Source: Macrostomum lignano (Eukaryota). From it: a stretch of 64,000 nt of DNA. The position numbers were made by a program, and so were the translations under genes. The first letter of the stretch is position 1. Every line of letters begins with the position of its first letter. The stretch spans positions 50,705 to 114,704 of the forward strand of contig NIVC01003172.1 of assembly GCA_002269645.1 (NCBI GenBank), given 5' to 3'. Below the pieces are notes generated by a model. That model had not been told where the DNA came from and did no database searches. It saw only the letters and a program-made list of their open reading frames with translations. This document shows positions 22,396 through 25,179 of this stretch, piece after piece.

Positions 22396-25133
22396 TCAGG
22401 GCAGGTAACTGGCAATACACAGCGAAGCGTTCACGCCACCGAACCCGAAGCTGTTGCTCAGAGCAACCCGCCGACCGTCCGCTGGATTAGTCGGCCAATC
22501 CGCCGGCGGACCGTCGGGCACCAGACGGAGCGACTCTGACGCTGTCGGCAGGTCGGGCCGCGCCAGATTAGCCGTGGGCGGCACGCGGCCAGTCTGGCAG
22601 GACAGCGCAGTCAGCGCGGCCTCCACAGCGCCGGCAGCTCCGATCAGGTGGCCGAGGGCGCCTTTGCACGAAGCCACAAGGCAGCCTGGCTGGATGACGG
22701 AGGCGTCAACGCCGCTCAGCAGCGACTCGATGGCCAGCCATTCGGCGGAGTCGCCAATCGGAGTCGAAGTGGCGTGCGCGTTCACGTGGCCAACCTGGAG
22801 AGCGAGCGGCCGCTGCCAAGCTGCTGCAAAAAAGTTGGAAGCAGACAAGGTGGAAGCAGACAAGGTGGAAGCAGACAAGATGGAAGCAGACAAGGTGGAA
22901 GCAGACTAAACGGAAGCAGACAAGGTGGAAGCAGACAAGGTGGAAGCAGACAAGGCACTAATAACTACCAGAGTGGTTGCCGGCTTCCCGAAGCGCGGCC
23001 AGCATGCAGCGCCTGGCGCCGCTGTCGCCGCCAAGCTTCGGCGCCGTCAGATGATGCGCATCGCAGGCGGCGCCGTAGCCAAGGACTTCAGCGATTGGCG
23101 CCGGGGCGCCTCTGGCCAGCGCAGAGTCCAGGGCCTCCAGCACCAGCACGCCGGCGCCCTCCGACATGACGAATCCGCACCGGTCGGCATCGAAAGGCCG
23201 CGAAGCTGCCAGCGGATTGTCGTTGAAGCGAGTAGCCAGGGCGCGGACGCGACTGAAGGCCGCCACCTGAGGGGGATTTGGGTTTAATTTAATCGGCTGG
23301 TAGGATGGGCAACGCACATGACGGATGCTGAGTTCTTGGCGAGCACGGACAGACAGACAGACAGACAGACAGACAGACAGACAGACAGACAGACAGACAG
23401 ACAGACAGACAGACACACACACAGACAGACACACAGACAGACAGACAGACACACAGACAGACAGACAGACAGACAGACAGACAGACAGACACACAGACAG
23501 ACAGACAGACACACAGACAGACAGACAGACAGACAGACAGACAGACAGACAGACAGACAGACAGACAGACAGACAGACAGACACACAGACAGACACACAG
23601 ACAGACAGACAGACACACAGACAGACAGACAGACAGACAGACAGACACACAGACAGACACACAGACAGACAGACACACACACAGACAGACAGACAGACAG
23701 ACAGACAGACAGACAGACAGACAGACAGACACACAGACAGACAGACAGACAGACAGACAGACAGACAGACAGACAGACAGACAGACAGACAGACAGACAG
23801 ACAGACAGACACACACTCTGACAGACAGACACACAGACAGACAGACAGACAGACAGACAGACAGACAGACACACAGACAGACAGACAGACACACAGACAG
23901 ACAGACAGACAGACAGACAGACAGACAGACAGACAGACAGACAGACAGACAGACAGTAAGACAGACACTAAGACAGACAGACAGACAGACAGACAGACAG
24001 ACAGACAGACAGACAGACAGACAGACAGACAGACACACAGACAGACAGACAGACAGACAGACAGACAGACAGACAGACAGACAGACAGACAGACAGACAG
24101 ACAGACAGACAGACAGACAGACAGACAGACAGACAGGCAGACAGACAGACAGACAGACAGACAGACAGACACAGACAGACAGACAGACAGACAGACAGAC
24201 AGGCAGACAGACAGACAGACAGACAGACAGACAGACAGACAGACAGACAGACAGACACAGACAGACAGACAGACAGACAGACAGACAGACAGACAGACAG
24301 ACAGACAGACAGACAGACAGACAGACAGACAGACAGACAGACAGACAGACAGACACAGACAGACAGACAGACAGACAGACAGGCAGACAGACAGACAGAC
24401 AGACAGACAGACAGACACAGACAGACAGACAGACAGACAGACAGACAGGCAGACAGACAGACAGACAGACAGACAGACAGACACAGACAGACAGACACAG
24501 ACACGCACGCACCGCAAGCGGGCCAACGCAGGCCTCGGTGCCGCCGCACAGGGCCGCATCCACGATTCCGTCGCGCACCAGTCGAAACGCGGCGCCAATA
24601 GCGTCGGCGCCGCTGGCGCACGCGGAATTCGGCGCCAGACAGGGCCCAGTGGCGCCGAACTCGATGGCCACCCGGCCAGCCGGCATGTTGTTGAGCAGCT
24701 TGGTGAGGAAGTGCGGCCCGACCTCCGCGTAGCCGCGTCCGCTGCGCAGCCCGACGCCGGCGTCCACCGCCGTCTCCAGCCCGTCCATGCCGCAGCCGAT
24801 GGCCACGCCGATCAGCGAGTCCGGCGAGCGCCGTCGCATCCCGGCCAAATCGGCGCCTTGGGCAGCCTCGCGCGCCGCTGCCAGCGCCAGAGCGGAGGCG
24901 CGGGACATCTCGGCACGGTTTCGCTTGTCAAACTGCCAGCTCGGCCAGCCGGACAGCTCGGCCTCGGGGATCAGGCCGGCCACTCGGCAGGGCAGTCCAG
25001 AGTAGCCGTCCGCCTCGGACAGACGACCGAAATTTGGCCGGCCGGCAAGCACTTGCGCCCAGACTGTGCGCCAGCCGGCGCCGACTGGGGCGGCCAGCCC
25101 GAGGCCGGTGATCACAACTCGACGGCAGCCGCT
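22396..25133 (-). CDS. OXSM: Beta-ketoacyl-ACP synthase (FabF/OXSM type); exons 25133-24513, 23266-22969, 22823-22396; no genomic ATG found
   Basis: RRVVITG, catalytic SACASG (Cys), NAHATST and GHLIGAAG (His), [12 protein letters not shown] joins with consistent phases (0, 1) give a 448-codon frame ending in TGA at 22396. Confidence 0.9.
22838..22955. repeat. 15-bp tandem repeat (GCAGACAAGGTGGAA) filling the second OXSM intron
   Basis: About 8 copies within intron 22824-22968. Confidence 0.93.
23348..24501. repeat. (GACA)n microsatellite filling the first OXSM intron
   Basis: Direct; intron 23267-24512. Confidence 0.98.
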
Positions 25134-25179
25134 CTGCAATCGTTTGGGAGCGGTTGGGATTTTGATAGTGGGGAAGACG

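Follow-up and report, generated by a model that had tools for sequence, protein, structure and literature searches.

Background

Initiation of translation at the terminal AUG of a spliced leader is already established in flatworms, and comparison with the described cases makes the gene for mitochondrial 3-oxoacyl-acyl carrier protein (ACP) synthase (OXSM) of Macrostomum lignano a probable further example. This gene lies in a stretch of 64,000 nt of the M. lignano assembly GCA_002269645.1 (contig NIVC01003172.1, positions 50,705 to 114,704 of the forward strand). The whole stretch is called the window throughout, and positions are given in its own numbering.

The best described cases are from Schistosoma mansoni. 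According to Cheng et al. 2006, as cited in PMC9851317 and PMC12582326, the leader's AUG stands in frame in 28% of the trans-spliced mRNAs of this parasite, and over 40 cDNAs depend on it. M. lignano has a single spliced leader of 35 nt, CGGTCTCTTACTGCGAAGACTCAATTTATTGCATG, with ATG at its 3'-end (PMC8629364), and this terminal ATG has been described as the likely translation start (PMC10468722). Between 30 and 39% of M. lignano genes are trans-spliced, with an enrichment among genes conserved with human (PMC8629364, PMC5730564). The top motif at 21,754 mapped trans-splice acceptors of this species is [T/C]TNCAG, and operons have been delimited by a repeat-adjusted distance of 1 kb (PMC8629364). 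In parasitic flatworms acceptors are extensively shared between cis- and trans-splicing (PMC12582326).

Here we describe a locus at which an otherwise complete reading frame starts directly behind such an acceptor. We consider it probable, though far from certain, that OXSM has no initiation codon of its own and that a leader added at position 25134 supplies the initiator AUG. OXSM is the condensing enzyme of mitochondrial fatty acid synthesis that is needed for lipoate synthesis, and it is presumably essential.

Results

An intact OXSM gene on the minus strand

The gene extends on the minus strand from 25133 to 22396 and comprises three exons, the splice phases of which agree throughout. Its spliced product of 448 aa is a complete beta-ketoacyl-ACP synthase. 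Exons 2 and 3 were located by tblastn with fragments of bacterial beta-ketoacyl-ACP synthase II (KAS II), and the junctions were then read from the sequence. In the following list TRF stands for Tandem Repeats Finder.

24513..25133, minus strand: OXSM exon 1, 621 nt with 207 codons, both ends in phase 0, active-site Cys in ACASG
23267..24512, minus strand: OXSM intron 1, donor GTGCGT, acceptor ccctcAG, nearly all (GACA)n/(TGTC)n microsatellite
22969..23266, minus strand: OXSM exon 2, 298 nt, ending in REAGNHS, with the catalytic His of DAHH; placed by tblastn and sequence reading
22824..22968, minus strand: OXSM intron 2, 145 nt, donor GTAGTT, acceptor tttgcAG, with 15-bp tandem repeats (TRF, 22832-22955)
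22396..22823, minus strand: OXSM exon 3, carrying NSFGFGG, stop codon TGA at 22398-22396

Exon 1 reads AGC GGC TGC CGT CGA GTT GTG ATC ACC GGC from 25133 onwards, has a GC content of 0.72 (0.83 at third codon positions, GC3), and ends at the donor GCG|GTGCGT with the GT at 24512-24511. The donor of exon 2 is G|GTAGTT in phase 1. The microsatellite of the 1.25-kb intron 1 occupies 23348-24497 with a period of 4 and about 290 copies (TRF); the reading frame of exon 1 stays open through the whole of this microsatellite, to 23291.

Among solved structures the top matches of the product were those of human mitochondrial OXSM (9n50, 2iwy, and 2c9h; E 1.6e-89, 304 bits), with a collinear alignment over query residues 4-445. 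The best bacterial FabF scored 268 bits, about 35 bits below human OXSM, and the closest named matches in a search of 1.84 billion protein representatives were animal OXSM proteins. The product has a full-length ketoacyl synthase (KS) fold and contains ACASG (residue 172), DAHH (277), NAHATST (322), SCKGALGH (359), and NSFGFGG (431), so that all motifs bearing the Cys-His-His active site and the conserved Lys are present. The matches to human OXSM together with this full set of motifs therefore identify an intact condensing enzyme of the OXSM type. The gene is the M. lignano orthologue of mitochondrial 3-oxoacyl-ACP synthase (OXSM in animals, CEM1 in yeast; KAS II type). A 20-bp satellite, ATCTTGTACACAAGGAACCC, is present in 42 copies at 21452-22304; its start, about 90 nt past the stop codon of OXSM, falls within the 3'-untranslated region or shortly after it.

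The first exon starts without an initiation codon

The sequence upstream of exon 1 is divided into three parts.

25134..25139, minus strand: 3' splice acceptor TTGCAG, G at 25134, proposed spliced-leader addition site
25179..26401, minus strand: pyrimidine-rich satellite with GGGGAGAAT-type units on the plus strand (TRF), directly upstream of the acceptor, putative outron
26402..26991, minus strand: unique AT-rich spacer with the sole non-satellite minus-strand ATGs, no credible coding exon among them

Read down from 25140, the minus strand runs ...cccaaacgaTTGCAG and then enters exon 1 with AGC GGC TGC CGT CGA GTT; the acceptor sequence is ...caaacgaTTGCAG, with its G at 25134. The TTGCAG acceptor fits the trans-splice motif of M. 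lignano, [T/C]TNCAG. Going upstream from its AG on the minus strand, no other AG is met for 933 nt, until 26067, and the sequence upstream of the acceptor consists of pyrimidines to 77% over 100 nt and to 85% over 1000 nt.

Only three codons of exon 1 precede the conserved RRVVITG core, which starts at codon 4. The first ATG of exon 1 in any frame is found at 24908. It is the in-frame codon 76 and lies inside the fold, and a start at this Met76 would lose the invariant R-V-V-x-T-G-x-G strand (invariant columns of alignment A1). A run of 75 codons without Met is not in itself improbable by chance. The weight of the argument rests on the position of the core at codon 4 and on the presence of a sole AG in 933 nt.

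Only six ATGs are present on the minus strand in the interval that separates the acceptor from the stop codon (27448) of the RAD54B-like gene lying next upstream. The satellite holds three of them (25311, 25697, and 25939), with one ATG-bearing repeat variant recurring once per frame, and the other three, 26732, 26945, and 26961, belong to the AT-rich spacer. The frame of exon 1 remains open upstream of the acceptor to a TAA at 26414 and includes a single in-frame ATG, that at 25697. We rejected this open frame as evidence of coding. The satellite is open in all three frames (0-1 stops per 422 codons), and the open in-frame reading is thus compositional.

In the spacer, ATG 26732 opens an open reading frame (ORF) of 5 codons, and neither ATG 26945 nor ATG 26961 is followed by a phase-0 donor that fits the M. 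lignano consensus GT[G/A]AG. The ORF starting at 26945 (64 codons, donor CAG|GTGGGC at 26753) was considered as a first exon and rejected because of its non-consensus donor. Furthermore, its GC3 is 0.39 versus 0.70-0.83 in every recognised coding exon of the window, and its peptide is rich in Phe and Leu with acidic residues, unlike a presequence.

To judge from the sequence, none of the six ATGs belongs to a credible upstream exon, and no genome-encoded AUG was found that could give the full-length conserved protein. These observations agree with the initial annotation of this stretch, which had named the gene OXSM, had placed the acceptor TTGCAG, ending at 25134, before AGC GGC TGC CGT CGA GTT, had put the first in-frame Met far inside the KS domain, and had seen no convincing upstream exon with an ATG. 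The name is borne out by human OXSM as the best match; coordinates and sequence of the acceptor were recovered on the minus strand, the first in-frame Met is that at codon 76, and the search for an upstream start now extends over all six ATGs up to the RAD54B stop.

The leader AUG would complete the reading frame

The 3'-end of the M. lignano leader reads ...TTTATTGCATG and hence provides a terminal AUG. Exon 1 starts in phase 0, which would place the leader AUG in frame with the conserved ORF as AUG AGC GGC..., with no stop codon between them. The predicted leader/exon junction is ...UUGCAUG|AGCGGC..., which reads across the junction as ...TTATTGCATG|AGCGGCTGCC and in its read form as ...CAATTTATTGCATG|AGCGGCTGCCGTCGAG. 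The predicted product starts with MSGC- and has 449 aa. Its first 40 residues include 5 Arg and no acidic residue, a composition that is compatible with mitochondrial targeting and not diagnostic of it. The leader sequence itself is absent from the 64-kb window, even if 3 mismatches are allowed, and an Rfam scan of the window gave no match.

Several orthologues start as close to the core as the predicted M. lignano protein. Four residues precede the core in Tigriopus japonicus (AUZ82873.1, MPMG-RRVVVTG), in Pichia membranifaciens (XP_019020229.1, MSQS-RRVVVTG), and in a Logan-derived relative (P0129, MAGI-HRVVVTG), whereas the N-terminus of the coral Xenia (XP_046846516.1, MAYRHRRVVVTG, MAYRH-RRVVVTG) is one residue longer than that predicted for M. 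lignano. An N-terminus of four residues in Pichia, Tigriopus, and M. lignano would therefore leave no room for a cleavable extension. Since orthologues have equally short N-termini, a missing presequence is no evidence of a missing exon. Cem1 of Saccharomyces cerevisiae starts with MSRRVVITG.

The closest relative outside Macrostomum (P0122, 54% identity) is encoded on a 3752-nt contig (L001) of Logan SRR21676473, with the gene at 271-1605. It has an ATG of its own, the N-terminus MTKSGGGVIYNAATAAMN-RRVVVTG, and a GC-rich coding sequence. No recognisable leader was found in its 270-nt AT-rich 5' region, and the contig starts with a Nextera adapter.

The premises on which the initial annotation had based its proposal also proved sound. 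It had assumed a leader ending in AUG, which M. lignano possesses (PMC8629364), and the use of such an AUG as initiator in flatworms, for which Cheng et al. 2006 is the source given in PMC9851317 and PMC12582326. Its reading of the junction in frame follows from phase 0 of exon 1, and the N-terminus that it regarded as natural has the same length in the Tigriopus and Pichia orthologues and is one residue shorter than that of Xenia.

A public protein model starts at the same residue

An exhaustive HMMER search of the 1.84 billion representatives returned a protein of M. lignano, UniRef100_A0A1I8IIW1 (P0121), which is 99% identical to the OXSM product. It begins with 'SGCRR' without Met, at the same residue as exon 1. 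A start of this kind is what genome-anchored annotation gives when no ATG is encoded at the locus, and we take it as a weak hint in this direction. Missing from the model are 72 residues (VLGYGA...LAIE) that include both motifs with a catalytic His; ...APAPIAE is instead joined straight to SLLSGVD, apparently via cryptic GT/AG sites. Because of two residue differences, A58P and V204I, the model represents a different allele or a duplicate. Word-index protein searches with exon 1 and with a distinctive 63-aa piece of exon 1 found no close relative.

Arrangement with the upstream RAD54B-like gene

The gene upstream of OXSM lies on the same strand and is followed by a repeat array.

27446..35774, minus strand: RAD54B-like SNF2 helicase, ATG at 35774, stop codon TGA at 27448-27446, Pfam SNF2-rel_dom and Helicase_C on its exons, possible operon partner
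26992..27414, minus strand: 31-bp tandem repeat, 13.7 copies (TRF), starting 32 nt past the RAD54B stop

We take the N-terminus MRRSGAPSQ... and the motif ...KKHK|VWEGDG of the helicase to resemble human RAD54B. Its introns are packed with tandem repeats, e.g. at 34245-34715 and 34965-35500.

The RAD54B stop and the OXSM acceptor are separated by 2,312 nt on the same strand. Two tandem arrays account for 1,646 nt of this distance, and the remainder of about 666 nt lies within the repeat-adjusted 1 kb used for same-strand neighbours in M. lignano operons. The layout is operon-like and co-transcription of the two genes is possible, though putative. In the downstream position of an operon, OXSM would have to be trans-spliced. 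No AATAAA or ATTAAA polyadenylation signal was found between RAD54B and OXSM or after OXSM. A RAD54B-OXSM fusion protein, for which there is one fused model in a pseudoscorpion annotation (P0128), was considered but has no support at the M. lignano locus.

Other features of the window

On the plus strand, at 49181-49211, the gene for a leucine-rich repeat protein shows an acceptor-like site, CTTCAG, with the G at 49186; the ATG of the gene itself follows 22 nt downstream, at 49209. In contrast to OXSM, a leader added at this site, if it is used, would give an out-of-frame upstream AUG. The minus strand carries a single-exon ORF for an M13 (neprilysin-like) peptidase at 6275-8287, which encodes 671 aa from its own ATG. 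It matches Pfam Peptidase_M13 (1e-24) and Peptidase_M13_N (9e-19) and is very divergent; a word-index protein search with it returned no relative. Two retroelement remnants are located on the plus strand. One of them, at about 10300-12700, is a frame-shifted element resembling long interspersed nuclear elements, with weak endonuclease and reverse transcriptase matches, and the other, at 60418-61005, has a reverse transcriptase domain (RVT_1, 1e-14).

Discussion

The position of the acceptor, the lack of a usable genome-encoded AUG, and the AUG at the end of the leader suggest how OXSM may be expressed. Either the gene would be transcribed from its own upstream region, or its pre-mRNA would form the downstream part of a polycistron shared with RAD54B. 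Trans-splicing of the 35-nt leader to the TTGCAG acceptor at 25134 would then place the 3'-terminal AUG of the leader directly before the codon AGC, and translation would yield the 449-aa MSGC- protein without any N-terminal extension beyond the catalytic fold. This protein might enter the mitochondrion by an uncleaved N-terminal or an internal signal, as the equally short orthologues of yeast, copepod, and coral must. An uncleaved N-terminal signal is present in mitochondrial 3-ketoacyl-CoA thiolase, which is likewise an enzyme of the thiolase fold. It is from the sequence that we infer the addition of the leader at 25134, the use of its AUG as initiator, and the import route.

A number of observations weigh against initiation at the leader AUG. 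The context of this AUG is weak, with U at -3. The acceptor at 25134 could equally serve cis-splicing. Most animal OXSM proteins, e.g. those of Acanthaster and Sabethes and P0125 in alignment A1, have a presequence of 25-40 residues. The public M. lignano model is faulty, and a contig break in the satellite, and not a cDNA from which the leader was clipped, could account for its 5'-end. Finally, neither OXSM nor RAD54B is named in the supplements searched from papers on the transcriptome and genome of M. lignano, and for OXSM this absence counts on the same side.

The main competing explanation is an unrecognised upstream exon that is joined in cis and in phase 0 to 25134 and supplies an ATG and perhaps a presequence. 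It owes this rank to the fact that acceptors can serve both cis- and trans-splicing, often in common in flatworms (PMC12582326), and that N-terminal extensions of 25-40 residues prevail in animal OXSM. Such an exon might be short, divergent, or lost in a mis-assembled satellite. The only candidate that the locus offers for it is the 64-codon ORF from ATG 26945, the GC3 and the peptide of which fit neither the coding exons of the window nor a presequence. Moreover, only six minus-strand ATGs are present in 2.3 kb, of which three lie in the satellite and the other three lack a consensus phase-0 donor. No such exon is included in the public M. lignano model, and orthologues without any extension exist. 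We therefore regard an overlooked exon as unlikely, though it deserves to be taken seriously.

Explanations that dispense with splicing at 25134 have to find a start in the continuous minus strand. The open frame continues upstream of the acceptor, and the segment ...ACT ATC AAA ATC CCA ACC GCT CCC AAA CGA TTG CAG|AGC offers near-cognate codons in frame, e.g. UUG or AUC, just upstream of exon 1; alternatively, a truncated protein could be made from Met76, the first AUG of exon 1. The open frame loses its force in view of the composition of the satellite, which leaves all three frames open, and non-AUG initiation is rare, while this species has a leader ending in AUG. A start at Met76 would cost the protein its first 75 residues and with them the invariant RVV-TG-G strand, and the enzyme would very probably be inactive. 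Initiation at a near-cognate codon or at Met76 appears quite improbable to us.

A start at the satellite ATG 25697 has still less in its favour, although it is in frame and no stop codon separates it from exon 1. It would add a Pro/Ser/Leu/His-rich extension of 188 residues that has no homologue and no basic residues, that would vary with the copy number of the repeat, and that is missing from the public model. As the ATG-bearing variant occurs in all three frames, and these are open purely as a result of the 85% pyrimidine content, we give this start hardly any credence.

Alternatively, the locus may be a silent or decaying duplicate whose 5' exon was lost to satellite expansion, so that the missing start codon would be functionally meaningless. 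The genome of M. lignano is partly duplicated, with a BUSCO duplication of 79% (PMC10468722), and the locus is swamped by tandem repeats. Decay is difficult to reconcile with a 448-codon frame that is intact over three exons with consistent phases and all catalytic motifs, or with a second allele or copy (P0121) that is 99% identical and has the same 5'-end. The GC3 of OXSM, 0.79-0.83, is also typical of expressed exons in the window. In our view a decayed copy is a poor explanation of the locus.

Supply of the initiator AUG by the leader remains the reading that we favour. A fuller version of it holds that OXSM has lost every genome-encoded start codon, that its translation depends wholly on trans-splicing, with OXSM probably in the downstream position of an operon with RAD54B, and that the protein is imported without a cleavable presequence; we judge the chances of this complete picture to be evenly balanced.

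If leader-AUG initiation of OXSM is true, the dependence on a leader AUG would extend beyond parasitic flatworms to a free-living member of an early branch (Macrostomorpha), which would argue for an ancient role of the AUG conserved at the end of flatworm leaders. OXSM would then show in a clean form how a housekeeping gene can owe the completion of its reading frame to trans-splicing alone, and it would add a metazoan mitochondrial KS without N-terminal extension. The current understanding would not change, as the mechanism is known and a specialist would not be surprised. The value of the case lies in its free-living, early-branching host and in its lesson for annotation. Genes of this kind will come out as 5'-incomplete in genome-anchored pipelines, as UniRef100_A0A1I8IIW1 does, and may be discarded.

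Comparison with known systems

Human mitochondrial OXSM (2iwy, 2c9h, and 9n50) is the best solved relative of the predicted protein and resembles it over the whole KS fold, collinearly and with the Cys/His/His motifs. The human protein has an N-terminal presequence that is encoded together with its own ATG. In contrast, nothing ahead of the conserved core is encoded in the gene of M. lignano. In this respect the yeast-type mitochondrial KS (CEM1 family, Pichia) and the Tigriopus protein are closer, since four residues stand before the RRVVxTG core in all of them (MSQS- and MPMG- versus MSGC-), but in Pichia and Tigriopus the ATG is encoded in the gene itself.

With the downstream genes of leader-resolved M. 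lignano operons (PMC8629364), OXSM shares an upstream gene on the same strand, an adjusted gap of about 0.67 kb, and a [T/C]TNCAG acceptor. It differs from them in the raw distance to RAD54B of 2.3 kb and in that the co-transcription and trans-splicing of the two genes are putative.

The closest parallel are the flatworm mRNAs that start at a leader AUG (Cheng, Cohen, Ndegwa & Davis, J Biol Chem 2006), termed 'slORFs' in PMC9851317. As far as these cases are described there, those of S. mansoni are supported by cDNAs and reporter assays, whereas OXSM of M. lignano is known from genomic inference. The likeness consists in a leader ending in AUG and an ORF that runs in phase 0 from the acceptor. 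It further includes the lack of any other usable AUG and a predicted N-terminus like those of the orthologues. At the level of its sequence, the OXSM locus thus has every feature by which the slORF class is recognised.

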